Shown: one piece after another, positions 14,673-47,665 of the stretch | How the letters are laid out: every line of letters begins with the position of its first letter | How positions within the stretch are numbered: position 1 is the first letter of the stretch | From: Macrostomum lignano | Lineage: Eukaryota | DNA: 64,000 nt | Reading direction: 5' to 3' | NCBI GenBank assembly: GCA_002269645.1 | Contig: NIVC01000629.1 | Span: 1-64,000, forward strand | The notes under the pieces: model-generated | Told to the model about the DNA's origin: nothing | The model's input: only the letters and a program-made list of their open reading frames with translations | Databases searched by the model: none | Made by a program: the position numbers and the translations under genes

Positions 14673-15388
14673 TTGAAAGCATTTATGAGCAATTTGAAGA
14701 GTCTAACAAAGAAAAGCAATACATCAATTGCTTTATTTTTGAATCGCCTTCCAAAAGAAAAACGCGGTTCCTTCAATGATACTTTGGTAAGCCTCGTTCA
14801 TCAAGCCACCGATAAGACGATTGAGGATGACGAATCTAGTAGCAACAAGAAGAAATCAAACAAAGCCGAACAAAGTGCGAGATTCATTGTCAACTTGAAA
14901 GCGTGGCTATCTAAGCATCACACTGAGGCGATTCATATCAAGACAGACTATCGAGAGCTGGAGAAGCTGATCAAGGCTGAAATCACATCTGACGACACTG
15001 CTACTAGCTTATACGCGGAGCTATGCATCATTGAAGAAAAGGTCGATGAGATTAAGGGAGTAATTGGCGCCAAAAAGCCGACACCATCGCGTTTCTATCC
15101 GAGACTATGAGCAATCAGGAAATTCAAAGTCGTCTTAAGTGCGGCGACAACTATGTTTCACGAATGAAAACTTTCCACAAACTTTGTGAAGACTATCCGG
15201 CTCTTCGTTTCGCGCCATACGCATATAACACAATTTTGCAGTATAAAACCACCAGTGAGTCTGCTGCAAACTCAGACGAAGACTTTTGCTCGATGTTGAA
15301 GACACCTCTGACGCCACAATTCGAAGGACGCGATGACAAAATAGCAGTGGGGATCAGCCGGAAAGTTTCTATTAGCCATCGGAAATGA
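14673..15388 (+). CDS. Unknown cargo ORF pair (14673-15110, 15107-15388) specific to Polinton A
   Basis: Two overlapping ORFs, possibly one frameshifted gene. No counterpart in B and no motif recognised. Confidence 0.4.
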
Positions 15389-16112
15389 TTGATTTTATTT
15401 GTTTTAAATAACTGATAATAACTGAATCGCTTGTTTTAGCCATTATTCAATAACAGTTTATAATTCCACACCATTTTAGCCACTATCAACAGTTTTATAA
15501 TGTATAACATTTATAAAGAAAAGCGCCAACTGAGTCAAACTAAACTAACACTTAACAAAATTATTTACTCTCTTACTCCTCATTGTTCCTTTTACATAGA
15601 TAAATGCGGCAACTCAACTAGCGCCAATCTTTATAATTATAAAGAAAAGCGCCAATTCTAGCCACACTAAGCTCCTATGGAATCTAGCCTATTCTTTTGA
15701 GTGTTCACGCATTCATTTTTCTGTTACTAAAAATAGACAAAAATGGCACACCATACGCAAGTATACAATCTGAATGAATTGCAAATAGGAGACCCAGTAG
15801 AATACCGAGGTGAGTGTCTTTTTGACATAATAGGCGCCGCAGCAAATACAATAAAAGATAATATGCCACTAATAGCACAAGCAGGCTCAGCAGCAGGCTC
15901 TGTAACCAACGCAGTCAAGGGTGGAATAGAAGCAGCTAAGGCAGCAGAAGAGCTCAAGAAATTGAGAGAATTTAACGACACCCTCTCGCAAATAAAAGCA
16001 ATAAAATATTTAAAGCTAGCACAAGAAGCTGCTCAAGCCGCACAAGCTACTGAAACACCTACTAAAAGTAACCCATTGAGCAATAAAGATATCCAAGATT
16101 TTAATAAAATGT

Positions 16113-17031
16113 TGTAGTGATCCGCTAGTTGATGTTAGGCGTCCCACTTTGTCAGCAGTCTCCCTCGCCCTCGCCCTGGGTTGCTGTCTGCCGCTGGTCA
16201 GCTTCCCGCCCCCCTTGGCCCGTCTGTTGCTGCCCTTGGCCTGTTCTGCCCTTCTGCGTCTCTGTTCTCAGCCCTCAGCTTCTCTGCTGTGGGCTGTCTC
16301 TGTTTCGTTCCCGTCCCGTTTTCCTCTGTCATGTGAGCAAGTCACATGACAGACTCTGCGTTCTTCGAGTCCTAAAGTGCAGTAAACATGTTTACTGCAC
16401 TCGTTGGCCCTGTTTACCGGGAGAATCACGTGCTTTCGGACCCCTCCCTTCTCTAAGGAGAGGAGTGACTCATGTTGCTAAAAATAGCAACTGAGTCACA
16501 GCCGCGTGTACTCTGGCCGGAGACCTCAAGTGACGTCAGTTCTAAAAATAGAACGAGTCACGAGGTCTTGTGCGTGGGTGTTTCCCGTCTATAAATAGGA
16601 CCCCTCTCCCCTTGTTTCCGTCAAGGAGGCTTCTTATCTGCGGAGAATTCACTAAGATCCCGTGTGCGTCAGTGTCTAACTAAGTGCCCTTTGCGTACTG
16701 AATCCGTTTGTACTGGTCTGACTGAGACCCCACTAAAGCCCAAGCCTAAGGGAGGCTAACACTGCCTTCCCAGCCACCCCTGAGCCCGGCGGGGATCTGC
16801 TGATCAGGACGCCTTGTTCATTAATCTGCAAATCTGCACGCTGTGCTGAGTTCGTTGACTTGTTTATTTCGTTCCGACGGGAAGCTCACCTCATCGAAGG
16901 CCGAGACCTGAAGGAACTGGTGGCAGCACTACCTACGCTACTGAGAGTTGAGAGAACTTCCCAATGAAGAGGCTCGAGTCTTAAGGTAATCCGCAAGGGC
17001 CTAATCCGGGAAGCAAACAGCCAGTATTTCA
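16113..17031 (+). mobile_element. Solo LTR (919 bp)
   Basis: TG...CA ends, 4-bp TSD ATGT (16109-12 and 17032-35), TATAAATA at 16590. Absent from the homologous gene in B. Confidence 0.85.
16466..16597 (+). promoter_or_regulatory. Enhancer/promoter cluster in the solo LTR
   Basis: AP-1 TGACTCA (16466) and TGAGTCA (16492), MEF2 CTAAAAATAG (16478, 16542), CRE TGACGTCA (16531), TATA (16590). Confidence 0.55.
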
Positions 17032-17086
17032 ATGTTAACCACAATTAAAGGTGGAAAAGGATTAAAGAAGTTTTAGTAATATAAAA

Positions 17087-17296
17087 ATGGACTCAGATAA
17101 TGATGAAAATCGCACACTTTTCATATCTGAAATAGTAGACAGTTTAAATTTAGATGATAACAAACATAGCCACACAATTTTTAAACGAATCGATAGATTG
17201 GGTAAAAAATTGGATTATGATATTGACACGTTTAAACTTGCTAGAAAATATGCACAAAAAGGAAGACCAATCTCATTTAAGCTTAGTAATTTCTAA
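17087..17296 (+). pseudogene. Truncated homologue of the protein-X-like gene; marks the deletion of pPolB in A
   Basis: Matches the N-terminus of B 37991-38950 and then breaks off. Confidence 0.8.
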
Positions 17297-17750
17297 TAAA
17301 AATTTTGTTGGGATGGAAAAATCAATTCCAATATAAAATAGGGTGAAATATCGCTCGATCATTAAATCCTGCTCGGCAGATGTTTTATATTTTTTCTGAA
17401 ACTCTAATATTCTTTCACACGCTCCTTTGTAATCTTCATACCAAAAGGCATATCTTGATCTTCTTTTTGCGCTATTTTCACATGCAACATAACTCCTAAA
17501 AGGCTCCAATTGAGAAATTGAACTATGACTCATAACTATAATTTTTTATAATTTTTTTACATCATCAATTGGTTCAGAAAACCCAAAATATAAGCCCTCT
17601 TTACCTGGCGGCTTGGAATTTTTTATATCATTTAAAACTCTTAAATAATCTTCTAATTTAGTTTTAAACATATGTATATGTAACATTTGTATTCTCTTCC
17701 TCAAAGTATACCAAAATAACTTCAATAATATCTATAGTTTCCTTCATTTT

Positions 17751-18953
17751 TTATACTTCAAAATATGGATAAATCTGCAAATATGAAACTCCTGGATTGC
17801 CCGAACCACCAGTAGCGGTTGTGCAAAACAATCTATAAAAAGTATAAGCAATTGTTGTATACGGTAAATTAAAATATTTAATTGCTGTTCCAACCAAACC
17901 AGCAGTAGTTGATAGTAAATCAGTCCATGTGGAGCCGTCATTACTTCCTTGAAAGATAATATCGTTTGGGTTTTCACCACTCAATCTACCAACTAAAGAA
18001 AATCTCCAAATTTTTACTGCGCCCGGAAGTTAAATTTTCTTCATTTCCTGTTTGCTGTTTCACCATTTGTTGCCCACTCATTATCCGAAGCAAAATTCTG
18101 ATTAAAAGCGCGAAATCCTTCATATCCTGTAAAATTCGTTGATGTTGTTACAAAAAATGTGGGGTCGTTATTATCAAATAAAGTTGGAATGTGCCCATTA
18201 ACATTTTTCAATCTGTCAAATTGAAACTTAGTAACGGCTTCGCTATCGTTGGTTGGATTCGGTAGATTGGTAATAGCATTTCCACCCATATCAATTACTT
18301 GATCAATTATTCCTAAATTCATTTTAAGAACCGCTGATCATGAAGTCTGACGATAAATCTGCATTGCGGATAGACCCGGATTTGTTGAACCGGATGTTGA
18401 AGTAAGACAAAATAATCTGAAATATAAATATTCTTTATCAAAATTTTGTGTGACATTAAATGTTCGGGTTGTCGATGATAATGCAGTATTTTCTGTTAGA
18501 ATTAATATGTCCCAACTTGTATTGTCATTACTCCCTTCAAATCTCCATGACGCGGGGTGCTCGGTAGATGGCGATGCTCTCCCAGTCAAATCAATTTTAT
18601 TACAAAGTATTGCAGATGGGCATTGAACTTTTATCCAATAATCGGTTTGAACTCCAGCAGTAGCCCAATCAGTTGTTGAATCTGCATCAAACGCTTTCCA
18701 GCTTGCAAAATCAGTTGTGTTAAATTCTGAGCTGGCTGTAATTGCAAAACCATTTCCACTCCAATCAGCCATGGTTGGAATTTGACCAGTTTCTGTCAAA
18801 TTAAATCTGTCTTGTTTCATATCTAATAAATTGTCGGTCTCTGTTTTTGTATAACCACTAGATGTGTTTACCAAATTATCAACTTCGGTTTTGGTATATG
18901 AATCATATATTTCGTTTTAAATTTTATGAATTATCAACTTCGGTTTTGGTATA
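17751..18953 (-). pseudogene. C-terminal part of the Polinton A fiber/receptor-binding protein, with two F5/8-type-C (discoidin)-like domains
   Basis: ASSEFN..WKAFD...W and P..WRFEGSND..WD motifs occur twice. Frameshifted, and separated from its N-terminus (42828-43233) by the Gypsy insertion. Confidence 0.75.
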
Positions 18954-19457
18954 TGTTATGTTAGAAGTCAAGGCGAGTGTGTGCGAGATACGAAACGCTT
19001 AAAGCCAGCGATGGGCAGAGAGCCGATATATATATTATTGTTTAGTCAAGTGCAGTGAGCAATGTACATTGTACGCGTCAATGGGGGACTAGGGGCAGGT
19101 GCACTGAGAGAGAAAGAGAAAGACTGCACGTCGGCTAGCCAGCATCGATCATTACACAACACCTCCTTACATTGAAAAGTACGAATATAATGGCACGAAA
19201 ATAGTAGCACGAATAGAGTCGCACGAAAACAGTTGAATGGGGAAAAATAAAAACATTGAAATATTTTACGATCATATGGAACAATACAATATTAATGTTG
19301 AAAAATATCATTTTAGACCGCTTTTTAAATCGCACGCTTGAGCAGCAAAGGCAACACATCAACTTATGCTATACCTCCTTTCACCAAAATTATAGAAACT
19401 TAAAAAGAGCTTTCAGTTCCTTTAAATTCAGTCAACAGTCAGTTTTCACTCAAAAGT

Positions 19458-20945
19458 TCACCACGAGGCCTGGTACCTCTGCGGCTGATGGACAAGCCGA
19501 CCTCGCTTGGTCCGGAACCCAGAGTCGTCCGAGCTTGAGCACGGTTGCACAGATGCCGGCTGCTCAGCTGGCTGCACTGGCTCTGCAGGCTGCTCTGTCG
19601 CGGGTTGCACGGCCGGTTGCACGGGTGCCTGCTGGTCGTCCGCCTCCGACAGATTGACATCCTCATCAGCCACTGCCACTGGGTAGCTTTCATGGAATGG
19701 CACGCCGATCTCACGTGGCCTGATAAACCGCCGGTTGCGCCTGAGCAGCTGGCCCGACTCCGTGCGAAGCCAGTACGACCGCGGGCTGCCGTCCACCTCG
19801 CTGTCGACCTCGGCAGCCACCCAGTTCCGACGATCGCACTGAAGCCAGACCGGCTCGCCGACCTCCAAGCGTCGAAGTGCGCGCGCACCGCGGTTGCAGA
19901 GCTGAGCTGCCCGGGTCCGCTCCTTCTGGAATGCTTCGATGCTGGCATGCACGTAGGTCTCCCGAGGCCGCAGATCTTGCACCGTTGTCGGCAGGTCGCA
20001 CCGCAGTTTCCGGCCAAACGCCATTTCCGCCGGGCTGGGGAAGCCGCTGCCGACCGGCGTGTTGCGATAGTGCAAAAGGGCCAGTGCCAGGCTCTGTCCA
20101 GTCTCCTGGCACTTCTTCATCATATTCTTGGCAGTCTGCACATATCGCTCTGCTTTGCCGTTGGACTGCGGGTAGGCCGGACTCGATGTCCGGTGCTCCA
20201 CTTGAAATCTGGTCATGAACTGGCGGAACTCTCCTGCGGTGAACTGCGGCCCGTTGTCACTGATGAGCTTCTCTGGCACTCCAAAGTTCTGGAAATGGTC
20301 TTGGAGCACCTGAACTACTGCCAGGCTTGTTGTCGACCGCAGGCGGGTGATGCTCATCCAGTGGCTGTAGGCGTCTACGTACACCAGGTGCGCAGCGCCC
20401 CGGAACTCGAACAAGTCGGTCGAGCAGACTTGGAACGGAAACTCGGGCATTTCAACGGTCATCAAAGTCTCCTTTGACTGGGCCTTCATGTTACGCTGGC
20501 AGGCCTCGCACTGGCTGACAGTTCGCTCGATGCAGGTGCGCATTCCTGGCCAGTAAAAATAATCTTTGGCTTTCAGGTCCATCTTGACGATTCCAGGGTG
20601 TCCAGCGTGCAAAATTCTTAGGATCGAGCTTCTGGCGCTGCCGGCTGGCACGTAGATGCGGTCCTTCAGGCACAGGAGTCCTGAGACGAAAGTCAGATCA
20701 TGGCGAAGATCCCAAAATACTCTCAAATCGTCAGGTAATCGGTTTCGATGCTCGGGCCATCCGGCTTGAATGACCTCCTGCAGACGCTGGCTCGTCTGGT
20801 CTGCAGCCGTGGCCTTCTTGATCATTGTCAGAATCTCGCGGTCTCCACTGAAGCATCGCTCCACAGCTAGCACTTGTCCGTCCAAAGCTTCCTCCAGCAG
20901 AAGCGTCAGGCTGTCCGTCTTTCCGTGAGCTCGGCTTAGCGTGTC
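19458..20945 (-). CDS. Gypsy pol 3' half (integrase, HHCC plus DDE)
   Basis: LHAGHPG..CEAC, TDLF, SDNGPQF and PQSNGKAER motifs. Joins the 5' half in frame as LYVADTLSRA once B is removed. Confidence 0.9.
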   Translation of the reverse strand, partial: DTLSRAHGKTDSLTLLLEEALDGQVLAVERCFSGDREILTMIKKATAADQTSQRLQEVIQAGWPEHRNRLPDDLRVFWDLRHDLTFVSGLLCLKDRIYVPAGSARSSILRILHAGHPGIVKMDLKAKDYFYWPGMRTCIERTVSQCEACQRNMKAQSKETLMTVEMPEFPFQVCSTDLFEFRGAAHLVYVDAYSHWMSITRLRSTTSLAVVQVLQDHFQNFGVPEKLISDNGPQFTAGEFRQFMTRFQVEHRTSSPAYPQSNGKAERYVQTAKNMMKKCQETGQSLALALLHYRNTPVGSGFPSPAEMAFGRKLRCDLPTTVQDLRPRETYVHASIEAFQKERTRAAQLCNRGARALRRLEVGEPVWLQCDRRNWVAAEVDSEVDGSPRSYWLRTESGQLLRRNRRFIRPREIGVPFHESYPVAVADEDVNLSEADDQQAPVQPAVQPATEQPAEPVQPAEQPASVQPCSSSDDSGFRTKRGRLVHQPQRYQASW

Positions 20946-21276
20946 AGTAGTATGTAAAAGTACGCTTCTAGCCCCAGAGCCCTTTTCAAACAGACGATTT
21001 GAAGGGCTAGAGGGGGGACACGAGGGGGAACCAAAAAACACTCTTAAACACCCTTTATCCCCATCCAACACCCCCAACACCCCCAACACTACACAATACT
21101 ACTAACACCACCCAATACTACTAACACTTCCAAACAATTCCCTCGCGTCCCCCCATTATTAGCCCTTCAAATCATCTGTTTGAATAGTGACTGATCTAGA
21201 AGCGTACTTTTACATACTACTACTTATAACCCCAGGCCGCGCCGCAGGCGCGAAGGGTCTTTTTCTGTTACTAAAA

Positions 21277-21579
21277 ATGAACCGAGTTTACACCTTTTCA
21301 GTTAGCGATACTTTTGAGACTGTTGCTAAAAATTCAGAGATTATAAAACAACATATTTTGAATGGAATAATTGATGAAGTTTATTTAAAATATGACGATA
21401 AGCACGAACTAAAACTTTATCCGTTAGAGTTGGATGGTTTGTATGATCTAGAACAAGAGGGTGAGTTAATATTTCAACTTGGAGATTATTTAAATTCGGA
21501 TGATTGGGAGGTTCGTTCAGATGATTCCAATTCAACAAATAGTTCATATGAAACCAGCGATTCAGAAAATTATTGTTAA
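21277..21579 (+). CDS. Small acidic hypothetical viral protein
   Basis: AAAAATG start lying inside the TIR, with an open frame. Confidence 0.55.
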   Translation: MNRVYTFSVSDTFETVAKNSEIIKQHILNGIIDEVYLKYDDKHELKLYPLELDGLYDLEQEGELIFQLGDYLNSDDWEVRSDDSNSTNSSYETSDSENYC

Positions 21580-21594
21580 AAAAATATATAAAAA

Positions 21595-21792
21595 ATGAAG
21601 GTAAATCGTATCAACGATACGCATGCAAAGCATGATTATTCCTACATTGGATATGTGCCAATTAATGAACTTAATGAAAATTTAAGTTTGATAACAGTTG
21701 AACAAATGTCAATAATAATATTAGTAACAATAATAGTGATAATTTTGTTTTTATTTGTTATAAAAAATTTATTACCATGTTGTCTTAAGTAA
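21595..21792 (+). CDS. Small transmembrane viral protein
   Basis: C-terminal hydrophobic helix. A homologous remnant is present in A at about 49715-49840 (minus). Confidence 0.6.
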   Translation: MKVNRINDTHAKHDYSYIGYVPINELNENLSLITVEQMSIIILVTIIVIILFLFVIKNLLPCCLK

Positions 21793-21818
21793 TTATTATT
21801 TAAAAAATAAACTAGAAA

Positions 21819-22208
21819 ATGAGGTCTGATTTTGCAAACAATTATGCCAGCACTTATGACAGCGCCCATCCTATAGCAGAACCGCCCCTTTTATTTGATA
21901 AACACAAAGATTGTAAAGAAAAGGATGCTAACGACCTAACTGAAGCGAAATTCAATCTAAAGATTATAATTGCTATTATTTTACTAGTCTTACTTGAGAT
22001 GATTATTTTTCCCGCCTTATTTTTATCTAAAAAATTAAATATAGAAGGAATACCATATAATGAAAGAAATATAAACTTCGCAATAGCATTAATAGCAATA
22101 TCAAGTACATTACTAATAATTGCATTACTTATATTAATTATTACAATTTCAATACTGCTTAATGATAAACGAAAACAACATAACTCCCTAGCTTCATTTA
22201 AAGTCTAA
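21819..22208 (+). CDS. Two-TM hypothetical viral protein, absent from A
   Basis: Two hydrophobic stretches and an AAAATG start. Confidence 0.55.
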   Translation: MRSDFANNYASTYDSAHPIAEPPLLFDKHKDCKEKDANDLTEAKFNLKIIIAIILLVLLEMIIFPALFLSKKLNIEGIPYNERNINFAIALIAISSTLLIIALLILIITISILLNDKRKQHNSLASFKV

Positions 22209-22209
22209 A

Positions 22210-23787
22210 TTAAACTAACATTAGCTGGTTCTCATAAAACGAACCTAATATTTCTTCACCATCCTTATCAGCAATGATATAGGTTGTGGGATTTGTATTT
22301 AAAACTTTACTGATAGTAAATTTCTCACTTATTTTCCAATATCCTTTTCTTCCCTTTTCAAACTTATCTTTCCATTTATAGATATACACAGAATCACCAA
22401 CCTTAAAAGGTTTCTTTTTATTTTTTTCAAAGTCCCCGAAGGTAACATTAACATTTTCAGGCTTGTTATAAGCTTGTTGAGGAGTCATCTTTATAGCTGA
22501 ATGATATGAATTGTTATAATCTTTCACTACGTCTGGTAATATTTTTACCCATTTTTGGTTTCCATTCAAACTAAACTGAAACCATAATTTTTTACCTAAA
22601 GTTCGATTAAATCTTTCTATTAATGCGTTTTTGCTTTCTCCATAAATAGAATAAATTTTATTAATATACTCCCCATTCGCGTCCTTTTTCCTTTCTTGTC
22701 CTTTTTCAAAATGATACAATTTATACATGTGAGGATTGTAAAATTCTTTTCCTTCGTCAACACACAACCTTTCACTTCTTTCTCCAAGGCTTCTAAAAGC
22801 AGCAGCAACCTCCTCTCCCTTTTTGGATTTTAAAGGAACAGCCCACGCGTATCGAGTAAAACCATCTAATATGGTTAAGATATATTTATATCCTCTATCG
22901 TTCGGCATTGACATTAAATCAGCATACCAAATTTCATTCTTTTTGAAGTTCATGATTTTTCTATAAAATTTAGGTTTTCGGTATTCTTTATGAAGAACTT
23001 TTGCCTCATCAGAACTTAACCCACTACCACTTAACAACAAACAGTCAACACAATTATTTCCATGTTGGTTGTAATTAATTCCTAAACCAAATTTAACTTT
23101 AGATTGCAAGATCTTTTTAACCATCCACCGAGTTAATCTTTGGCTTACCGATAAGCCCTGTAGATTATCTAATCCTTGAATCATCTTTTTATCGGCTTCA
23201 TGTTTTAATCTTAATGCTTCCTCGGGAGAGTTCTTGTCAGCATCTCTGTATGCTAAGTCATGATAATATGCTAACCAATCAATGCCATTAATGGGAATTG
23301 AATCAGCTTTTGGAGTATCATCAGGATTTAATCTCAAATCCAATCGCGTACCCGGCCGTTTGCCCTCAATCTTTCGAAAGAGGCTGGAGCACACCTTAAG
23401 CGGCGATGATTACCGCCCACCTCCGTCTGCTCTCTGAACCTTCTCCTTATATTTAAAATACTTAGGAGCTTGGCTGCGCATTGCCACCGTGTCTTCAAGC
23501 TTGTTACCTTTGGGAAGAGGAGTTACCTCTGTTCCTTCAAAAGATTTCTCAGTTGAAGTGGTACTTGAAGCTGTATGACGGGTTTCACGCAATTTGAAGA
23601 TGTCGCCACAAATAGTGACTAGCAGTAGCTTTGCTTCTACCACTCAGGCCACGGGTTAACCTGCAAACGAGTACCCAGGAATGTGTAATTCATTTGTATA
23701 CCTCCCAGTAGTAAAGACTGGTGGTAAGCTAGTTAATCCTTTTTGTAAGTCTAAAAATCCTCCTTCAAATACTAATTGATTGCTCAT
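22210..23787 (-). CDS. Phospholipase A2 - rve integrase fusion, join(23787-23659, 23355-22210), 424 aa
   Basis: Splicing restores ELHIPGYSFAG^PGTRL...PINGIDWLAYYHDLAY (parvovirus-VP1u-like PLA2), followed in frame by WYADL..YILTILDGFTRYAW, VDEGKEF and IERFNRTL (DDE integrase). Confidence 0.9.
23356..23658 (-). ncRNA. Group I self-splicing intron, subgroup IC1 (303 nt, no ORF)
   Basis: Exon ends in U with P1 CAGGU/GCCUG (U.G pair), and the intron ends in G. P3 CAUCUUC/GGAGGUG, P4 UGCGUG/UGCGCA, P5abc with GAAA loop and A-rich bulge, P6 GCC/GGU, P7 GAGAGCA/UGCUCC with intact G-binding pair, P9 GAAA. Confidence 0.93.
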
Positions 23788-24271
23788 TTTTAGTGACTAA
23801 AAAACAATTCTCTATCAGTTTAATAACTTCTAAATATTGATCACCATATAAAAAATTTAAAGCAAATTCCCCAGTTAACAAGGTAACACCATTATCAAAT
23901 ACCTTTTGTACGGGGTTTTTAGTAGTATTATTAATGCAAATATAATATAAATCAAATTCGGGATTAACATATTTAAATTCTAATAACTTTTGAATATTTC
24001 TAAATCGACTCGATGAATTATCTGTGTTATCAGAAGATTTTAACTCTAACGCAATTTTTCTATCTGTTTGAATTAAATCAATTTTATTTACTTTTTCAAA
24101 ACAAAAATGTTTAATAGCTAATAATTCATAAAGAGACCCAAGACGCATCTGAATTGTTTTAATACGGTTTGCAATTATTAATTCATCTTGAAATATTTTA
24201 TTTAGTGTTCTGTCAGAACCAACTTTATCATAAATAGGTTTACAAAGACAATCTTTTATCGTATTTTCCAT
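23765..24271 (-). CDS. PD-(D/E)xK endonuclease, Eco47II-like
   Basis: IDL..TDRKIALELKSSDNTDNSSS fits the D..ExK..NTxNSSS pattern I recall for RE_Eco47II-type proteins. Assigned by eye and needs an HMM check. Confidence 0.65.
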   Translation of the reverse strand: MENTIKDCLCKPIYDKVGSDRTLNKIFQDELIIANRIKTIQMRLGSLYELLAIKHFCFEKVNKIDLIQTDRKIALELKSSDNTDNSSSRFRNIQKLLEFKYVNPEFDLYYICINNTTKNPVQKVFDNGVTLLTGEFALNFLYGDQYLEVIKLIENCFLVTKNEQSISI

Positions 24272-24316
24272 TTAAAAAAAATAAATTTAATTAAATCGAA
24301 CCAAAGGTTCGCGACC

Positions 24317-24994
24317 CTACGGGGCGATCCCCGTATGTCCAGCAGCTTTCGCAGCAGCTAAAACAAGTTTTCGCGGAGTTTTAAATCCTTCGCCAATCGC
24401 CGGTTTGTTATTTATAGAATCAACAATCCTTTTATACAAGCTGGTATTTTTAGCAGCCCGTACTCCTAACTCATCATAAAAATTTTTAGCACTTACTAAT
24501 TCATCCCTTGTATATAATTCAGGGTTAAATCTTACCCTAGGGTTCATAATAATATTATATGCTCCACCCAATTCTCTATATAGCTCATTTCGATTTTTAT
24601 CAACCCCACCAATTCGGTAATTATCATTACCTAAATCCATCACAGCAATACTTTGTGGTGCAGCTCTCGGATATTCATCAACTCCACCCCGCTCTGCGCG
24701 CCTAATCTCTGCAACTCTCAATAGTGCTTGATCAACATCATAAGCAGGCGGCTCATCCAAAATTTCATCCTCTTTTGGCTCCGTATTCTTAGCAATTTTT
24801 TCAAGAAGGTCTTTATCTGTTTTTTCTAGTTCACTAATTTTCCCCGTAATAGGATTAACAAAAGGCGCAGCAAATCTTTCGCCAGCTAGCTGCATTCCTA
24901 ACTTTCTTTTTTGTAAATTTCTAACAAAATCAGGATATCTTTGCTTCTCTTTATAAATCGCTAACTCTCCATCAACGTCCATAAATTGACTCAT
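24317..24994 (-). CDS. Conserved hypothetical viral protein
   Basis: Homologue in A at about 46974-47653, with a highly conserved C-terminus GFKTPRKLVLAAAKAAGHTG. Confidence 0.75.
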   Translation of the reverse strand: MSQFMDVDGELAIYKEKQRYPDFVRNLQKRKLGMQLAGERFAAPFVNPITGKISELEKTDKDLLEKIAKNTEPKEDEILDEPPAYDVDQALLRVAEIRRAERGGVDEYPRAAPQSIAVMDLGNDNYRIGGVDKNRNELYRELGGAYNIIMNPRVRFNPELYTRDELVSAKNFYDELGVRAAKNTSLYKRIVDSINNKPAIGEGFKTPRKLVLAAAKAAGHTGIAP

Positions 24995-25027
24995 TTTTTA
25001 ACATAAAAACTTTTTTAACTTAAAAAA

Positions 25028-26508
25028 ATGGCCGAAACAAAAACCATATGGAGTGATAAATTTCATTTTAAAAAGCATCGTCAGTATATTAATGAGATCA
25101 GGGCAAGAGATTTAAATTCTACCCAACCAACAAGTGATAATTCAAACAATTTTACTACGGGAACGGTAACTTTTGACATTGGGGCAACAGACAGCGTTTT
25201 AGATATGAAAAACGCGTTTTTCCGCGTTAGATGGTTGTATACCAGAAACGATGGAACTGCTCTTGCAGCCGGTGATATCGCAGATCGTTCTGGAATTATT
25301 ATAGAAAATGATTGGTTTTATAAATGTTTTTCCCAAGCCCAACTAACAGTTAATGGAGCCGAGGTTGAGACATCAACAAACCCAGCAGAGATTAATGGAG
25401 TTTTGAAACATTTAAATTATACTTATTTATCAAAACAAGTTGGCGATAGTGTTGGGTGGATGCCGGATAAGGGTAATGGACAAGCAGTAGTTTTCCCTAA
25501 TGTACAAAATGCAGCTGGCGCAGATACCGCAGCTCTTATAGCTTATCTTAATACAAATATAGTTCCAGTTGTAACTGCAATGACTAACACAAAAGATATT
25601 AACACTGGTTTTATAGATCGTCAGAAAAAATTCCCAGTCGCGGTTTTAACCACAGCAACCGCATATGAGCAGGACTTTTCAATATTCCCACTATTTGGGT
25701 TCTTCTCACCAAATCGGGTATGGAAAGGATTAAAATTTGGGGTACAGTTGCAAATATCTGGTGGATATCAGCCTAGGATACTTTATGGAACCTCGATTTC
25801 AACCGAAATAGCAGTTCGCATAGCATCAATTCAATTAGTCGTGCCAAAACTCGAGCTAACGGCACCGCTTTTAGAACACGTCAATAATCAGATAATGCTT
25901 GATCAAGAAATATTTTATTTGAATCGTCGACACTTTATGCGAACCATTAATAACAATCAGGATTCATTCCAGTGGCAAATAATGATATCAAAACGCCGGG
26001 TGAGATATATTTTTGTTTGGTTTAAGATAACAAATAGAAGGAGTAAAAGAGCAAACGGGGATTTATATTGGCTTCAATCAGAAGATGTAGCAGCTCATGC
26101 AGCCACCGCAACCGACAACGCGGTTTCAGCTATTTACGAGTTTAATGTCCAGAATATCCGCCTGCAGGTTGATGATCAATATTATCCGGTTAAAGACCCC
26201 TTAATCTAAACATAGCAAATAATAATGTTAATGATTTTATAAAATATTATCAGGATTATGTCAAAAATGAAGCGTGTGCTGTTCCTCAGTACACACCCAC
26301 AGAGTTTCTAAACATTCACCCAGTGGTTGTTTTTGATCTAACCGCACAGAAAGAAAATGTAGCCAATGTTGGTTTGAATTATCTGTTAGAGATTAATAAA
26401 ACCGGTAATCAGGCACTAGACGCCCACGTATTGTTTCTAGAGGAATATATGGCAATTGCTAAAGCAGATGGTACCGTTGTTCAGAATGCACCCATAGATA
26501 AAAATTAG
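25028..26508 (+). CDS. Major capsid protein (hexon-like), with one frameshift near 26197
   Basis: Size, beta-rich composition and position beside the ATPase and penton. Comparison with A shows a 1-nt deletion at KDPL/NLNI. Confidence 0.8.
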
Positions 26509-26527
26509 TTAAATTATATCCTTAAAA

Positions 26528-27290
26528 ATGGTAAAAGCAAAACACAATCCAATATTTCCAAACGATCCTTTTCTTTGTTTAGTAATTGGTGGGTCTGGTA
26601 AAGGAAAAACACACTTTGTTTATGACCTGTTAACAACCGATGGAATGTTAGACTATAATAATTTATTAATATATACTAACAAACCTAGAATAAAATATTA
26701 TGAATTTCTTAAACATGGATTAAAAAACAAATTAAAAAAAGATATCTTGTTTAGAATGTTAAGAGCATATGAGAAATATGAGGATGATGACGAACCTCGA
26801 TTTAACCTAGCAGACATTGAGGATTTATGTAAAAAAAACGGCAGAAGATCCAGAAAATATAGACAACAATTATCCAACTGTTAAAATATCAACCCGATTA
26901 TCCTATGATCAAATTCCAAAACATGATAAAACACTAATTATTTTTGATGATTGTATTAATGACGGAGATCAAGAATTGCAAAAGGAAATTTTTGTTAGTG
27001 GCAGAGGAGATGGAATTGGAGCTTTTTATCTTACTCAATCCTTTAGAGAATTAGAATCGATTGTAAAAAAGAATGCTAGCTGTTGTGTAATGTTTGATTT
27101 AGATAACTATGATCTACAAAATATACACGCGAGATTTAATCCAGGGTTGGATACAAAACCATTTAAAAGTATGTGTAAAAAAATTTGGGATGATAGTCAA
27201 TACAAACACATATATATCAACCCTAGGTTAGAAAGAAAAAATCGAATCTTAACAAATTTGATAAAAGAAGATAATGAGGACGAGGATTAA
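26528..27290 (+). CDS. A32/FtsK-like packaging ATPase, frameshifted at a poly-A run near 26835
   Basis: Walker A GGSGKGKT, Walker B LIIFDD, then GRG...YLTQS. Confidence 0.9.
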
Positions 27291-27425
27291 AGCTCGAACC
27301 TTTGGTTCGCGTGCCTGTTGCACGTTTCACACTATAAAAATGGCAACAAATTTAGACACTATAAAATAATTGGTACGCTCGTAGATCGAACTAATTCAAA
27401 GTTTAGTACAACCTTACAGTTTATA

Positions 27426-28133
27426 ATGACAACCAGCGAGCAACTGATTCAATTGCGCGATCCGTTACAACTCGATCAAAGTCTAAGTTATCAAATTGGT
27501 TTGATACTATTTTCGGTTTTTAACATGCCTCAATTAATTAATGCAACAAATAATCAATTTAGATATTCTAAAGATTCAGGAGTCAATTGGACAACATTTA
27601 GCGTTAACCCAGGGGCATATAGCTATACCGATTTGAATGCTTATATAGAAGGTGAATTAACAGCTAATGGTGATTGGGTATCAGGCGCGATTGTTATAGG
27701 TGTTGATTTACCATCGGGAAGATTCAACCTATCACTAGGATCTGGATATCAGGTTGATTTCACAATTGCAAATTCACTCAGAACCATACTTGGATTTAAT
27801 TCCCGAATCGTTACCACATCAAGCACCGGTGATACGGTGGGAAACATTGAGGGTGGAGTCAATACAATTAATATAACAACCGACATATCAAACGGCGGTT
27901 ATATAACAGATGATAATGGAGTTTTGGTTCAACGTGGAATCATTTATTCAATCCCGTTTCTTGCTGTTCCAATTGGAGAGAAAATGATTGTTTCACCCCA
28001 AACTCCAATATATTATCCTTTAAATCAATATAGCGTTCAATCAATTTATATTAGGATCGTAGATGAAAGCGATAGGTTAATAAGTTTTGGCGGACAATCA
28101 ATAACAGTAATTTTACGTATTAAACAGATTTAA
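27426..28133 (+). CDS. Minor capsid protein (penton-like)
   Basis: PGAYS..DLN, LRTILGF, INITTDI and SIYIRIVDE motifs typical of Polinton pentons. Start codon uncertain. Confidence 0.8.
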   Translation: MTTSEQLIQLRDPLQLDQSLSYQIGLILFSVFNMPQLINATNNQFRYSKDSGVNWTTFSVNPGAYSYTDLNAYIEGELTANGDWVSGAIVIGVDLPSGRFNLSLGSGYQVDFTIANSLRTILGFNSRIVTTSSTGDTVGNIEGGVNTINITTDISNGGYITDDNGVLVQRGIIYSIPFLAVPIGEKMIVSPQTPIYYPLNQYSVQSIYIRIVDESDRLISFGGQSITVILRIKQI

Positions 28134-28143
28134 TATAGTAAAA

Positions 28144-28312
28144 ATGGGTAATAATATAAAAAAACAAACGGAAAAAGTTAAAAAAGCTGAAGATAATTAT
28201 GAACTAGAACTAACGAAATTGAAACATTTTACAAGCGGAAAAAATCAGAAAGGAGCTGTTAAAACCCGCGGCTACGAAACTAACTAAAACCAAGAGTTTT
28301 TCAGGAACATAA
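28144..28312 (+). pseudogene. Small basic protein (MGNNI...KLTKTKSFS), frameshifted
   Basis: A homologue lies in the same position in A (about 43680-43855, minus). Confidence 0.45.
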
Positions 28313-28313
28313 A

Positions 28314-28790
28314 ATGGCACCGAGCAAAGCTCGCGACCCTACGGGGCGATTAACGTGGGGCGAGTTCAAACAAAGATATGGAACCGACACAACAAGCAAT
28401 ATCGAATTAACAAATTGGGCGAGACAATTAAAGATAAAACCATTTAGATGCGTGATGCGGGATGAGATCAAAGACTTACCACAATATGGATCATTCATTG
28501 TTAATATAGAAACAACAAAAGAAAATGGGGTTCATTGGTCGGCAGTTTATTCAAAACCCAAACTTGTTTATTTTTTTGATTCATACGCACTTCCTCCGTT
28601 ACAGGAAATAAAAGACAAATTTAACCATACTAAAAATCGTTTATGTGGAGACCACCACGAACAGTTTCAAACCTTTGACAAAAGTTATTGCGGACAAGCG
28701 GCGTTATTTTTTTTATATAAAGTTAACAAATCTAAGGAAAGACCCGAAGACTTTAAGATTATCATACAAAGTATGCGACCTGAGGTCTGA
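28314..28790 (+). CDS. Adenain-like cysteine protease
   Basis: GVHWSAVY, YFFDSY and QTFDKSYCGQ (His/Asp/Gln/Cys catalytic motifs). Confidence 0.9.
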   Translation: MAPSKARDPTGRLTWGEFKQRYGTDTTSNIELTNWARQLKIKPFRCVMRDEIKDLPQYGSFIVNIETTKENGVHWSAVYSKPKLVYFFDSYALPPLQEIKDKFNHTKNRLCGDHHEQFQTFDKSYCGQAALFFLYKVNKSKERPEDFKIIIQSMRPEV

Positions 28791-28820
28791 TTTTAGACTC
28801 TATAAAATAGACAGTAAAAA

Positions 28821-30866
28821 ATGTTATTTTCTGGAACACCCTCATGGAACGGAACAACAAGTAGTGGTGGTGGTGGCACATCTGGTGGCATCAGTGTTAC
28901 ATTCGGAGATAACCGATATATTAATGAGGATGAAGGTTATAAAAAAACTGAAATTGATAATAAACTAAATTTAAAAAGAAACGTTGCAGATTCCTATACC
29001 AAAACTCAAATCGATGATTCATTAAATTTAAAACGGAATGTTGCAGATTCCTATACCAAAACCGAAATCGACACATCATTAAATTTAAAACGCAATACAG
29101 CCGATTCCTATACCAAAACCGAAGTTGATAATTCATTAAATTTGAAACGGAACGTAGCCGATTCATATACAAAAACAGAGGTTGATAATTCATTAAATTT
29201 GAAACGGAACGTCGCCGATTCATATACAAAAACAGAGGTTGACACTGGGTTAAATTTAAAAAGAGATATAACTGATTCTTATTCTCGAACTGATTCTGAT
29301 TCACGTTATGTTCAAACCACCGCAACCGGAACCTTAGATATGGATAACAACCGAATTATAAATGTTTCAATTACAACGAATAACTCGGTGGTTGATAAGA
29401 ACTATGTCGATAATCAGGTTGCTAGTCGTAATGGTAATATTAATATGAATAATTTTAAATTAACAAATTTATTATTAGGATCAGAGGACGCAGACTCGGT
29501 AACTCTAGGCCGAGTAAACGAGCGAGCTAATGCAACAGACGCCGATATTTTTGCCACACCGCTTACATCAAATACTTCAAATCCTGATGTTGTTCTTACA
29601 GCATCTGAAAATACCAACAATGCTTTTCGAGTTGGAGATGGAAGCCTTGCGACACAATGGTCACCAAATACCGGAACCACAACCAATATGGAAATTCAAT
29701 TTGAATTTTTAGGTTATAATCGAAGAATAAATGAATTAAGAATTACAGGCAGCGCAACAATTGAAATACCCTCAGGGTGGTCGGTGCACGCAAAAAATAC
29801 TGCTGGCGACGCATGGACGGTATTAGGAACGTCGGGATCACCAATTCAAGCAACTTCATTTGCGTTATCTAATTTAACGACTAATTTTTGGAAATATTAT
29901 AGTGTTTTCTTCCCAACTGGTGGTACCGTTACACAGCCTATCGAAGTTCGCCTAATACAATTATTTGAACACCGAGTTGAAATTCAGGATCTTAATTGGC
30001 CAAATCAAATACTTTCTGCGACCCCGCGAGCGTACGTAGATCAGCTAGCAACCCCAACTTCAAATGGCAGAATGTCTGCCAGTGATAAAAATAAATTGGA
30101 TAAAATTCCCGCGATTGATGCTGCATTATTCGAGCCAGTAATTTGTAATTGGACTGGATATCAAAATCCAACAACCGCCGGAGATATATATCCAGTTGGT
30201 TCTTTAATTGGTGACGCTTCTTATATCGATTATCAAAATGGTGCTAGACTTACTCGTGAAACTGGTGGAGTCAGTGGGGCATTGCAATTTAATTTCACAC
30301 ATTTTCAAAATATATCAGCGTCTTTCTTTTTCAGAGTTGCCAATGCTGGAGGAACTGGAGCAGATGCCGTTTGGTTTTATGCATATTGTCACGAACGACC
30401 AACAACCGAAAGTGGGGCAGGTTTAGCAACAGACGCCGGATTGATAGTTTTTGCAAGTGAGTGGCATGATAAATTTGGCCTACTTTGGAGTTCTAAAAAA
30501 TCAGACGGATCGACCCGCGCGGATGTTAATACTGCCGCGGATCAAACGGTAGACTATGCAAATATTGATAATGGCGATTGGCATTTATTTGAAATTAATA
30601 TTTTAAATCAAAGGGTTTGGCATCGATTACAATCATACAATGTTTCGGGTGATTCTTATACCCTCATTGGGCAAAATGTTTTTACTTATGATAGTGGAAC
30701 TTGGGGAACTTTAGATAAATCTGGAACTCTTATGGGTTTTGGTGCTCGAACTGGTGGAGCGGATGCTGCACATTTTATTCGTGGTGCGGTTGTATGTGGT
30801 AGTACATCGTTTGGTTATGTTTTTCCCTCTACTGTTTATTTGGAAAAACCACCTACACAAATATAG
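28821..30866 (+). CDS. Fiber-like protein: 19-aa YTKTEVDNSLNLKRNVADS repeats, a discoidin-like domain and an L-type-lectin-like C-terminal domain
   Basis: Six full repeats, then ASENTNNAFRVGDG..TQW, RLT...SGAL...F.F...GADAVWF and GFGARTGG..H.I motifs. Confidence 0.75.
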   Translation: MLFSGTPSWNGTTSSGGGGTSGGISVTFGDNRYINEDEGYKKTEIDNKLNLKRNVADSYTKTQIDDSLNLKRNVADSYTKTEIDTSLNLKRNTADSYTKTEVDNSLNLKRNVADSYTKTEVDNSLNLKRNVADSYTKTEVDTGLNLKRDITDSYSRTDSDSRYVQTTATGTLDMDNNRIINVSITTNNSVVDKNYVDNQVASRNGNINMNNFKLTNLLLGSEDADSVTLGRVNERANATDADIFATPLTSNTSNPDVVLTASENTNNAFRVGDGSLATQWSPNTGTTTNMEIQFEFLGYNRRINELRITGSATIEIPSGWSVHAKNTAGDAWTVLGTSGSPIQATSFALSNLTTNFWKYYSVFFPTGGTVTQPIEVRLIQLFEHRVEIQDLNWPNQILSATPRAYVDQLATPTSNGRMSASDKNKLDKIPAIDAALFEPVICNWTGYQNPTTAGDIYPVGSLIGDASYIDYQNGARLTRETGGVSGALQFNFTHFQNISASFFFRVANAGGTGADAVWFYAYCHERPTTESGAGLATDAGLIVFASEWHDKFGLLWSSKKSDGSTRADVNTAADQTVDYANIDNGDWHLFEINILNQRVWHRLQSYNVSGDSYTLIGQNVFTYDSGTWGTLDKSGTLMGFGARTGGADAAHFIRGAVVCGSTSFGYVFPSTVYLEKPPTQI

Positions 30867-30950
30867 GGTGAGGACTTCGTCCGCGTTCCTAAGGAACGAT
30901 CGCCCCGTAGGGTCGCGTGCAAAGTACGATTTAAAATATTTCTATATAAA

Positions 30951-31277
30951 ATGGCTTTTAGTAGAACCCCATCGATGCGACAAAATAATGTTATTATTCC
31001 TATTCCTAAACAAGAATCAAATATAAAAACATTCAAATCTCATACCAAATTTTTATTTAGCAATGTAAATGTTCAGGATAACAAGAAACTTCAAGAATTA
31101 ATTAAACTATTAAAAAATCATATTATACTTCAAGAGTTTTGGAAAACCGGATTTAAATGGGAGAAAAAAGAAAGAATAACTCCAATACAATACTTATTAA
31201 GCTCAGGACAAATCCCCAAAGAGCGCGGGGAATTCATTTTGGTGCTATTAAAAATAGACGAAAATGTCAGTGTCTGA
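30951..31277 (+). CDS. Hypothetical viral protein
   Basis: AAAATG start and a 108-aa open frame. Confidence 0.5.
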   Translation: MAFSRTPSMRQNNVIIPIPKQESNIKTFKSHTKFLFSNVNVQDNKKLQELIKLLKNHIILQEFWKTGFKWEKKERITPIQYLLSSGQIPKERGEFILVLLKIDENVSV

Positions 31278-31521
31278 GGCAGATAAAAGGGAACGTGACC
31301 ATTTTAACCAACGTAAGGGTCACATGTTAAGTAATGTTGATCGTATTAATTATGATTATGATTTATATGCTAAAAAAGTAAGAAGGGTTTCAAACCATAT
31401 CAGAAATATGGATTTTTTCAATATTGGATTTGGAAGCTTATCAATGTTATGTGTAATTGTTTTATTCATACATATTCATACATTACCAGCTTTGCAAAAT
31501 CTAAAACAGCCATTCCAATAA
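31264..31521 (+). CDS. Hypothetical protein with TM segment, probably 3'-truncated against pPolB
   Basis: AAAATG start. The C-terminus overlaps antisense pPolB. Confidence 0.4.
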   Translation: MSVSEADKRERDHFNQRKGHMLSNVDRINYDYDLYAKKVRRVSNHIRNMDFFNIGFGSLSMLCVIVLFIHIHTLPALQNLKQPFQ

Positions 31522-32899
31522 AGATTGGTTTAAGAAACTTTGTTGTTTTATTGCGCATATGAATTCCCATAAACTCATCATCAAATTTTATAAAGTCTTT
31601 AAAGTTTGGTTTAGAAAAATATTTCTTTGCTTTATCAATATCCTTTTCTAAATGGAATTGGGTTCTATCTCTAATATTTTCAACCGTTTTTCCATAAAAA
31701 GCATTGTTCATTAATTTCCAGTTATCTTTCTCAAAATTTGTTTTTGACATCTGTCTCTGATTTGAATTAAAGTCAATATATTTAGCTAACCACTCTTCCT
31801 CAATAAACGATATTGTTCGATGTACTTTTGTAACTTTTAGTCCCTGCTTTTCATAAAATTGTAGAAGCTTATAATGCACTACATAGTTTTTCTTATCATG
31901 TAAATTTAGTATTAACTTTTTTGTTGCTAGATGTTTTGCATTATCCGCTTTGAGGTAATCTTTTTGTGTTTGTGATAAATCATCTTCATTAACTGAACAA
32001 TGCTCTGGAGCTAGAGGATATTTATATGTTTTTGCTTTTGCTTCCCGAGTATATTGCAAATCCACTTCTAAGATACATCCCCTTCCTTCAGGAATGTTTT
32101 TATAGTAATCTGGATCGTCTTCCCATTGGAAATCGGCAATTGGTAATTTTTGTTTCATACAACCGCCGTATAAATTGTTTGCATCTAGATATAATACATA
32201 TGATGATTTTTCTTTTTTATTATAATTTGGAAGATACTTATTATTTACTTTAGTATATCTATCTCCTAGTACCCCTGAGAATCCGCCACGAATTCCTCTC
32301 TCAATCATTAACAACATATCATGATCTGTTAGTAAATCAATTTTAACATCTGTATGTTTCAATCCACACGCCCATGTTAATCCCGGCGCGCTGAAACAAT
32401 ATGCGGGATCGATTTCGAAATTCTCATATGTATGATTTCTAAAGTTTTCAAACGCATCAGCTAGCAGGAGAACATCTGCTTTAAGATAAAGGTTATGATA
32501 ATCTTATAATGTTTTGCAATTAAAATATTTCCATACTTTTTGAGCATGTTCATAATCCGATTCGGTTATATTTGATTGTGATAGTATTGAGTAAAACTTT
32601 TCAATTGGGGGTAGTTGAGTATCATTAAATACCTTTTCAGATGTTACATATTCATATGGGTAGATGCCCTTGCGAGTTAATAGCATTAGTTCTTCCTCGG
32701 ATAGTTTTTCCTTTTTGAAACACTTCAATAGGATTGGAAAGTTTTTCTTTACTATTTCTAAATCCCATGGTTTTGGAACTAATGATGAAACAACATTCGC
32801 TAATGATGTTGATAAGAATCTCAAGGAGTCTAGAAAAACTAGATGGGAATATTTTTTCCATATGTTATTGATATGTAATTTTCTGATGTTTTAGGTAAT

Positions 32900-38950: not shown

Positions 38951-38960
38951 TTTTATATTG

Positions 38961-47653: not shown

Positions 47654-47665
47654 AATTTTTTTTAA

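Follow-up and report, generated by a model that had tools for sequence, protein, structure and literature searches.

A candidate mobile group I intron with an Eco47II-family nuclease in a GGNCC-free Polinton of Macrostomum lignano

The window analysed here is a stretch of 64,000 nucleotides from Macrostomum lignano (contig NIVC01000629.1, positions 1 to 64,000), and it contains two copies, A and B, of a Polinton/Maverick element. In both copies, a gene that joins a phospholipase A2 (PLA2) domain to an rve integrase is interrupted by a group I intron, and a gene for a small PD-(D/E)XK nuclease lies directly upstream. The favoured reading, with a probability of about 65%, is that this is a mobile group I intron with a homing endonuclease derived from the Eco47II restriction-enzyme family, residing in the PLA2-integrase gene of a Polinton that is otherwise free of the word GGNCC. 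Because the nuclease is encoded inside the intron in related elements, intron presence is polymorphic, and mismatches between near-identical elements cluster at the insertion, the nuclease is most likely the homing endonuclease of the intron; by the logic of homing, the insertion point would then lie inside the site of the enzyme. Homing, splicing in vivo, cleavage at GGNCC and any effect on host or rival DNA are inferred here from sequence comparison.

The intron and the nuclease gene

The interrupted gene and its neighbor have the following parts in the two copies.

Copy A, 23765..24271, minus strand: nuclease gene, open, 168 amino acids, free-standing, assigned to the PD-(D/E)XK enzymes of the Eco47II family
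Copy A, 23659..23787, minus strand: PLA2-integrase exon 1, 43 codons, from translation, tblastn to exon 1 of L005, L007 and L008, and alignment with copy B
Copy A, 23356..23658, minus strand: group I intron, 303 nt, no open reading frame (ORF), from Rfam RF00028 with boundaries read from the sequence
Copy A, 22210..23355, minus strand: PLA2-integrase exon 2, open, 381 codons, starting CCG GGT (P-G-T-R-L-D)
Copy B, 47666..48164, plus strand: nuclease gene, broken by one frameshifting indel, with two in-frame indels and no in-frame stop
Copy B, 48145..48269, plus strand: exon 1, broken by one frameshifting indel relative to A, ending GCAGGT
Copy B, 48270..48571, plus strand: group I intron, 302 nt, from Rfam with boundaries read from the sequence
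Copy B, 48572..49719, plus strand: exon 2, three frameshifting indels relative to A, no in-frame stop, starting CCG GGG, 3' bound approximate

The original prediction, made from the letters of the window, had placed a group I intron at GGT^CCG in both elements, splitting the Gly-Pro codons of the PLA2 calcium loop, and this was borne out by Rfam matches above the gathering score (50) and by reading of the junctions. RF00028 matched copy A at 23365-23667 on the minus strand over the full length of the model (61.2 bits) and copy B at 48246-48562 on the plus strand (54.8 bits). Exon 1 of copy A begins with an ATG at 23787 and its terminal residues are Y-S-F-A-G, with GGT as the last codon; it ends in TTTGCAGGT, and in-frame continuation past this point gives a stop codon. 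Exon 2 starts with CCGGGT in A and with CCGGGG in B. The junction chosen is the only one that preserves the reading frame, and the predicted spliced product reads Y-S-F-A-G/P-G-T-R-L-D followed by an H-D dyad. The YxGxG loop and the HD motif after it correspond to the calcium loop and active site of a parvovirus-type PLA2. Without the intron, the DNA at this junction would read GGTCC.

Features of the RNA pointed the same way. Exon 1 ends in a U, which could provide the U.G pair of P1 (CAGGU with GGCCUG), and a terminal intron G together with a U at the 5' splice site was found in all eight introns examined. RNAalifold predicted 64 pairs from eight intron cores, 18 of them with compensatory double changes. 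The introns of copies A and B were 91.6% identical, which is above every gene compared between the copies (78-88%). Based on its score, the covariation of its core and its terminal bases, the window sequence is classed as a group I intron that is predicted to splice. Among the relatives described below, the L005 intron matched RF00028 at 65.3 bits; the ORF-containing introns of L001 and L002 gave no Rfam match at the gathering threshold, and were located by BLASTN with the window intron and by reading of the junctions. Two reading frames of 77-79 amino acids, at 23410-23643 on the minus strand and 48284-48523 on the plus strand, are spurious and consist of the intron core in one frame. Several database gene calls have this intron-core peptide (..SSTTS.EKSFEGTEV..) joined to the nuclease, and those protein records are therefore chimeric.

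Exon 2 of copy A holds the HD motif and the rve integrase core (Pfam rve, E = 2.2e-7) and could be aligned over its full length with four relatives. The PLA2 family Phospholip_A2_4 (PF08398) matched window exon 2 alone only weakly (E = 0.016) but full-length relatives strongly, and the PLA2 loop and HD motifs are visible across the splice junction. PLA2-rve integrases are widespread, with 609 relatives at E<1e-20, and among the 120 integrase matches listed most were uninterrupted and read ..G-P-G-T-R-L-D. The residue that follows the Gly of the calcium loop in PLA2-integrases is mostly Pro, although Ala, Leu and Lys variants occur. The fusion of a parvovirus-type PLA2 to an rve integrase (P0157-P0276) is widespread in these Polinton-like elements, which suggests that the integrase is carried in virions and assists entry.

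The nuclease gene had been described as directly preceding and overlapping the interrupted gene, and so it does: the ORF in copy A lies directly upstream of the integrase gene and terminates 23 nt inside exon 1, and the copy B nuclease, 86% identical to that of A, has the same layout relative to exon 1. A search of this protein against the RE_Eco47II (PF09553) profile and against known structures had been proposed as a check, with mixed results. The window protein itself fell below the gathering score of the family, while its relatives, profile-profile alignment and the predicted fold all supported membership. A profile search found 279 nuclease relatives, and RE_Eco47II was matched by nine of ten close relatives and by 45 of the 52 wider relatives that were sampled. 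Relatives that scored above the gathering score of 25.9 bits include P0300 (49.2), P0299 (49.4) and P0279 (39.2). The profile of the Polinton nucleases aligned to P0300 with hhalign (99%, E = 4.5e-18), and P0300 shares 45% identity with the window nuclease across 93 amino acids. The catalytic residues D65...E76-x-K78 are invariant or nearly so across the aligned nucleases, and a family-wide NTDNSSS stretch lies C-terminal to the D...ExK motif. An AlphaFold2 model of the nuclease (pLDDT 88, pTM 0.80) had as its best fold match in the Protein Data Bank (PDB) EcoO109I with DNA (1wte; E = 2e-4, TM score 0.62), and McrC and BamHI were also matched. Through these intermediates and this predicted fold, the window nuclease is assigned to the Eco47II-family PD-(D/E)XK enzymes. 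EcoO109I recognizes RGGNCCY, and Eco47II and Sau96I recognize GGNCC. The Eco47II family had previously been assigned to the PD-(D/E)XK fold (PMC3424549).

Other searches with the nuclease were negative. A PDB sequence search returned nothing significant, NCBIfam gave no match, tblastn against GenBank phages and PLSDB plasmids found no match, a profile scan of IMG/VR found none, and comparison of the model with viral predicted structures gave weak, generic PD-(D/E)XK matches only. An apparent extra C-terminal domain in P0001-P0004 and P0007 was rejected, as these tails turned out to be in-frame translations of the intron core. The context (T)TAAAAATG is shared by the start of exon 1 and that of the nuclease ORF in L001-L005, L007 and window copy A, the intron-internal nucleases included; this may be a common promoter or initiator motif, or mere AT-richness. 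In the wider family, P0025 is fused to a C5 DNA methyltransferase, and another member also matches the ribonucleotide reductase small chain and could mark a different intron or homing context.

Close homologs of the nuclease are rare: eight proteins among 5.8 billion, with 51-61% identity. Five of their contigs (L001-L005) and a further contig, L015, are all Polinton-like, with a double jelly-roll capsid, an rve integrase and an ATPase. In all six, the nuclease ORF lies inside the intron, in the order exon 1, P1-P2, nuclease ORF, P3-P9 core, exon 2. Exon 1 ends in ..Y-N-Y-L-G or ..Y-S-F-T-G with GGT as the last codon, and exon 2 starts with CCN GGN. The ORF occupies a hairpin loop between P2 and P3, of which the stem is visible on both sides; in the window the corresponding hairpin is short and free of any ORF, and the nuclease gene is upstream of exon 1. 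Eight database homologs, down to 38% identity and including P0009, P0014 and P0288, carry C-terminal tails of intron core, indicating that the association of nuclease and intron is old.

Elements without the intron were also found. L007, L008 and L011-L013 have neither the intron nor a nuclease on the contig, and have an intact GGNCC at the Gly-Pro junction. L011, which has neither, and L015, which has both intron and nuclease, came from the same sample and were 98.4% identical over 9.6 kb from the exact start of exon 2. Across the junction (L011:9981-10280 against L015:8986-10130, in windows of 100 columns), identity was 86-89% in exon 1, 95% in the first 100 nt of exon 2, and 100% in the next 1 kb. 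This clustering of mismatches is read as a probable trace of gene conversion during gain or loss of the intron.

A further lineage has a different arrangement. In L014 a diverged nuclease homolog (9441-9974) is directly upstream of an uninterrupted integrase gene (10001-11356). This homolog (hhalign 98.6%, E = 9e-16) has retained ExK and lost NTDNSSS. The calcium loop of L014 reads T-G-A-Q and not G-P-G, and GGNCC is absent there and elsewhere in the element. L006 (133-480), from the same lineage, likewise has Gly-Ala at the loop and no intron. These two show that GGNCC can be removed by amino-acid substitution as well as by an intron. The claim that the intron is essential was thus only partly upheld: the intron does occupy a site that cannot be removed synonymously, but it is not strictly needed, since L014 and L006 use Gly-Ala without it.

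The layout of the window, in which the nuclease gene stands outside an ORF-less intron, is that of 'collaborative homing', as judged by gene order. It may be derived, because both L005, the closest long relative, and a second group have the ORF inside; the counterpoint is that the nuclease-like gene of L014 occupies the same upstream position. The original prediction had proposed that the nuclease could drive homing as a free-standing enzyme. It is free-standing in the window, but in the six relatives it is intron-internal, and the homing role itself is plausible.

Avoidance of GGNCC and of Gly-Pro

Native viral DNA of the window had been said to contain no GGNCC, and counting upheld this: none of the 127 GGNCC sites in the window is in native element DNA of copy A or B, the native DNA of copy B being taken as 13727-16113, 17031-18952 and 42828-49991. 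Within 13-51 kb the word is confined to a long terminal repeat (LTR) retrotransposon, a long interspersed nuclear element (LINE) and a GC-rich insert at 16114-17030, and the DNA that surrounds the elements is rich in it. With Markov models of order 1, 2 and 3, respectively, 21.4, 15.7 and 11.0 sites would be expected in copy A, and 13.1, 10.7 and 3.5 in copy B. Among the 256 patterns of the form XYNZW, GGNCC ranked first in depletion. Non-viral AT-rich DNA in the same window, at 54-58 kb, has nine GGNCC in 4 kb; it had been considered as a possible third element, and was ruled out by these nine sites and its lack of viral ORFs.

The avoidance extends to the whole family. In nine nuclease-bearing elements (102 kb), GGNCC was found once, compared to 68.6, 50.8 and 30.2 sites expected at Markov orders 1, 2 and 3, while the mirror word CCNGG was found 65 times, with 67.8 expected. 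The single site (L003:5457) is a private one-base change in a copy that is disrupted by a retrotransposon, and four relatives read AGAACC at this position. GGWCC was seen once with 41 expected and GGSCC not at all with 28 expected, and every class of flanking base was avoided. Since all variants and flank classes are missing, the avoided word is GGNCC itself, neither narrower nor wider, and restriction of the avoidance to GGWCC or to RGGNCCY was rejected. No other 4-bp palindrome was strongly depleted. No methyltransferase domain was found in the ORFs of the window elements or in the precomputed Pfam gene tables of the relatives. The avoidance is thus specific, family-wide and unaccompanied by a methylase.

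Gly-Pro codons always force a GGNCC, so that DNA free of GGNCC encodes no Gly-Pro dipeptide. Over stop-free stretches 100 or more codons long, Gly-Pro was found 0 times with 39.9 expected, and the reverse dipeptide Pro-Gly 31 times. Two distant Polinton-like loci without the nuclease, one found in IMG/VR through integrase profiles and the other through capsid profiles, served as controls and were not depleted: L010 had 18 GGNCC with 13.9 expected, and L021 had 13 with 12.9 expected. Contigs on which the nuclease is paired with a C5 methylase retain GGNCC sites. Taken with the intron insertion at GGT^CC, this avoidance gives indirect support to cleavage at GGNCC by the nuclease, and loss of a 5-bp word across whole genomes argues for a short recognition site.

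Homing and the competing explanations

Under the favoured reading, the small PD-(D/E)XK nuclease would cut at or around GGNCC, and an element without a methyltransferase would stay safe by keeping its DNA free of GGNCC and hence its proteins free of Gly-Pro. The Gly-Pro of the PLA2 calcium loop would be the one site that is hard to lose, and here the intron interrupts the gene at GGT^CCN. Intron-bearing DNA would not be a substrate, and the mRNA would regain its Gly-Pro codons by self-splicing. If a relative without the intron shared the cell, it would offer a single GGNCC at the same place, and a cut there, followed by repair from the intron-bearing copy, would transfer the intron, the nuclease gene and nearby exon sequence. 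The placement of the nuclease as a putative homing endonuclease agrees with the position of its gene inside or beside the intron and with the intron-less alleles in which the presumed target is intact.

Several points weigh against this reading. RE_Eco47II was the sole Pfam match of the window nuclease, at E = 8.2e-5 and 22.7 bits, below the gathering score. The EcoO109I match is moderate, with its TM score of 0.62, a root-mean-square deviation of 7.4 A and 13% identity, and specificities can differ within one restriction-enzyme family. Homing endonucleases normally recognize 14-40 bp, and an enzyme that truly cut a 5-bp word would destroy host DNA as well. The nuclease-like gene of L014, which has no intron, indicates that the nuclease can persist without one. 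The decaying endogenous copies in the window give no indication of current activity, and the relatives were drawn from few metagenome samples, representing perhaps four or five independent lineages. Finally, L011-L013, which have no intron and no nuclease, contain GGNCC at the Gly-Pro site only, with none elsewhere compared to about 3.5 expected in each. The original prediction had proposed co-occurrence of nuclease, depletion and intron as a check, and the result was divided: nuclease-bearing elements are depleted, but so are these three, which also keep the GGNCC at Gly-Pro. Avoidance thus cannot be linked to a nuclease in cis, although, as L011-L013 are 95-98% identical to nuclease-bearing elements, their depletion may be inherited.

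One alternative is that the nuclease is a methylase-less restriction enzyme directed against host or competitor DNA, that the element has purged its own sites, that the intron masks the site that cannot be avoided, and that homing is a side effect. The total purge of GGNCC and Gly-Pro with no methylase would fit such a weapon, as would the free-standing nuclease of both window copies, the GGNCC-rich DNA around the elements, and L014, which has kept an upstream nuclease-like gene without an intron and has lost the site through a Pro-to-Ala change. The nearest non-Polinton relatives, moreover, are true restriction-modification partners of C5 methylases. However, the nuclease ORF is intron-internal in six of six relatives and, to judge from read-through tails, in eight database proteins; intron and nuclease were gained or lost as a unit between elements that are 98.4% identical; and elements that lack both and have an intact site are common. 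A weapon with incidental homing is thus considered unlikely. The same evidence bears on the earlier proposal that the intron hides a site the virus needs. The intron does sit exactly at the forced GGNCC, but with the nuclease encoded inside the intron in every fetched relative, homing fits better than recruitment of a mask.

A second alternative attributes the avoidance to the Eco47II-type systems of co-resident giant viruses, alongside which a replicating Polinton-like element would need to be free of the word. The nuclease would have been captured from a virus of this sort, and its toleration and its use in intron homing would have been possible only because the genome was already nearly free of sites. 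The closest non-Polinton relatives of the nuclease adjoin C5 DNA methyltransferases (P0279 and P0300; contigs L016, L017 and L020). The contig of P0300 (JGI sample 3300059473) encodes, in addition to the C5 methylase, an intein-bearing D5-type primase-helicase, Evr1_Alr and a protein kinase, a gene set that by content appears giant-virus-like. A nuclease/methylase pair of Eco47II type on such a contig makes giant viruses the likely source of the gene and a possible external source of selection against GGNCC, and suggests gene flow between giant viruses and Polintons. That the nuclease-less L011-L013 have GGNCC at the Gly-Pro site only also favors external pressure, and restriction by giant viruses has been discussed as a pressure on Polinton-like viruses (PMC12220804). 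On the other hand, given the similarity of L011-L013 to nuclease-bearing elements, inheritance can account for their depletion, these hosts have no known link to a giant virus, and the two distant Polinton-like controls, which may have other hosts, are undepleted. This explanation accounts for the avoidance and not for the position or polymorphism of the intron, so that it would add to the homing explanation rather than replace it; it is considered unlikely.

A broader scenario joins the two. Polintons may have captured a GGNCC enzyme from a restriction-modification system of giant viruses without its methylase and purged the word, after which the enzyme would serve both as the drive of the intron and as a weapon or exclusion device directed at the DNA of hosts, giant viruses and rival elements, and the intron would allow the one indispensable Gly-Pro to be kept. 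This combination is possible but tentative, and is held with less than even confidence.

The explanation that low G+C, codon usage or common descent accounts for the absence of GGNCC, and that the intron position is coincidental, is very improbable: the elements are 25-35% G+C, with few sites expected in each, and are related, so that their counts are not independent, but a compositional artefact was rejected by the pooled counts (30-69 expected and 1 observed, even with a third-order Markov model), by CCNGG at expectation with GGNCC first of 256 patterns in depletion, by Gly-Pro at 0 of 40 expected with 31 Pro-Gly, by the normal counts of equally AT-rich controls, and by the sole remaining site of intron-less relatives being the exact point of intron insertion.

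Returning to the homing reading, mobile group I introns with intron-encoded homing endonucleases have been reviewed (PMC3943268, PMC3984707), and those described here resemble them in several ways. The intron lies in a conserved codon, its ORF is in a peripheral hairpin loop, the insertion is inside the presumed target, presence and absence vary between near-identical genomes, and exon differences cluster at the insertion. Unlike known examples, the carrier is a eukaryotic Polinton/Maverick, the enzyme is of a type II restriction-enzyme family, the presumed target is 5 bp, and this carrier has removed the target word and Gly-Pro everywhere else.

PD-(D/E)XK is one of six known homing endonuclease families, and the same literature cites I-Ssp6803I as the PD-(D/E)XK homing endonuclease of a cyanobacterial tRNA intron (PMC3943268, PMC6083498). 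Genome-wide avoidance is not known for I-Ssp6803I, and a PDB sequence search detected no sequence relationship between it and the window nuclease. Both, however, place a restriction-enzyme-like PD-(D/E)XK fold at the service of a group I intron. The site recognized by I-Ssp6803I is long.

Examples of collaborative homing are the cyanophage psbA intron with F-CphI and T4 mobE with I-TevIII (PMC11296320, PMC2790892). As in those cases, the window nuclease adjoins the interrupted gene, and the intron has no ORF and splits the presumed target. Unlike those cases, a single family shows both states, with the ORF inside the intron in the relatives and outside it in the window, and the nuclease belongs to a different family. 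For these examples PMC11296320 cites Zeng et al. 2009 and Bonocora & Shub 2009.

The window nuclease is like Eco47II and Sau96I (PF09553) and EcoO109I in sequence family (via intermediates), catalytic motif and fold match, and the word avoided is their site. It is unlike them in having no partner methyltransferase, in the association of its gene with an intron of a eukaryotic virus-like element, and in that its specificity is predicted. Giant viruses carry restriction-modification systems (PMC7253447). The avoidance resembles that of restriction sites by phages, as a short palindromic word has been lost from a methylase-less viral genome, but here the avoided word matches the element's own nuclease, and the effect reaches the protein level as the loss of Gly-Pro.

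RF00028 introns have been reported in Polinton-like viruses of Paulinella micropora, Rhodomonas lacustris and Desmodesmus armatus (PMC12220804). Those introns are about 300-380 nt long and lie in an unannotated ORF of about 50 amino acids, and no nuclease, target site or avoidance was reported for them (PMC12220804). The window introns are of the same Rfam family and of similar size, and the ORF of about 50 amino acids could correspond to an exon 1 of 43-64 codons. The present results may offer a function for these unannotated group I introns. In the literature searched there was no report of an Eco47II-family enzyme serving an intron, of an intron in a PLA2-integrase gene, or of a nuclease-associated loss of Gly-Pro from a whole proteome.

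A common ancestry has been proposed for restriction enzymes and homing endonucleases, but intermediates between them are, to our knowledge, scarce. The nuclease described here, a member of a classical type II family, seems to work as the homing enzyme of an intron and yet to have kept a short recognition word. The cost is visible in the genome of the carrier, where other GGNCC sites and Gly-Pro are gone, an unusually clear effect of a nuclease on protein sequence; a mobile intron and a short-site nuclease together appear to have reshaped a viral genome. As the nuclease is found both inside the intron and free-standing within one family, the pathway that has been proposed for how mobile introns arise is accessible to study through comparison alone. 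If the scenario of capture from giant viruses with a dual role were true, the system would represent a still existing stage between restriction enzymes and homing endonucleases.

The nested elements of the window

The two Polinton copies are part of a nest of mobile elements with four levels, in which Polinton B contains an LTR retrotransposon, the retrotransposon contains Polinton A, and Polinton A contains a LINE. Each level is marked by its own target-site duplication or LTR pair.

Copy A, 20946..39998, minus strand (the strand of the nuclease/integrase module): Polinton/Maverick element, from self-BLAST, ends, duplication and gene content
Copy B, 13727..49991, plus strand: Polinton element, from self-BLAST, ends and duplication, with breaks counted against A

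Copy A has terminal inverted repeats at 20946-21292 and 39643-39998 that are 96.6% identical, and its 6-bp target-site duplication reads CGTGTC. Copy A lies within the LTR retrotransposon (18953-42827, LTRs 99% identical), and the LINE at about 33020-36250 was later inserted into it. Copy B has inverted repeats at 13727-13869 and 49852-49991 and the 6-bp duplication CTGGGG, and is split by the same retrotransposon. By self-BLAST, the copies are about 80% identical over 7 kb and lie in opposite orientation.

In copy A, Pfam identified the rve integrase with its N-terminal PLA2-like domain and a Pox_A32-type packaging ATPase. Further ORFs are capsid-like, penton-like, protease-like and fibre-like, and a protein-primed polymerase is present in pieces; for the window polymerase, capsid and protease, the assignment relies only on position and on similarity to relatives. 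The assignment to the Polintons/Mavericks follows from the inverted repeats, the 6-bp duplications, rve and Pox_A32 in the window, and DJR-like_dom and DNA_pol_B_2 in the relatives.

Both window copies are endogenous and decaying, and copy B is a fossil. In copy A the nuclease and both integrase exons are open, while the capsid-like gene and the ATPase gene are each in two ORFs and the polymerase is broken into three or more pieces, at one point by the LINE. Copy B has frameshifting indels in every gene compared with A, some of which could be assembly errors: one in the nuclease, one in exon 1, three in exon 2, and 2-12 in each of the other segments, along with a few in-frame stops.

Several minor features were noted. 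Copy B is embedded in a satellite array with units that resemble GGGGATTCTATATGACCCAGAC. The insertion at 16114-17030 in copy B, about 51% G+C and not present in copy A, has all five GGNCC sites of that arm. The fibre-like protein (ORF 28821-30866) has tandem 19-residue repeats at 28938-29282, D-S-Y-T-K-T-E-I/V-D-x-S-L-N-L-K-R-N-x-A, which are found in copy B as well (42828-43117). Among the relatives, there are nuclease domains unrelated to the Eco47II-like gene, namely PDDEXK_3 genes (L011:19733-20116 and L013:17659-17949) and Endonuclease_7 domains in the two largest ORFs of L001 (390-3416 and 5122-7863). A palindromic stretch of 118 nt in L001 (8265-8382) matched Rfam MIR7504 on both strands just above the gathering score, and is probably an inverted repeat rather than a microRNA.

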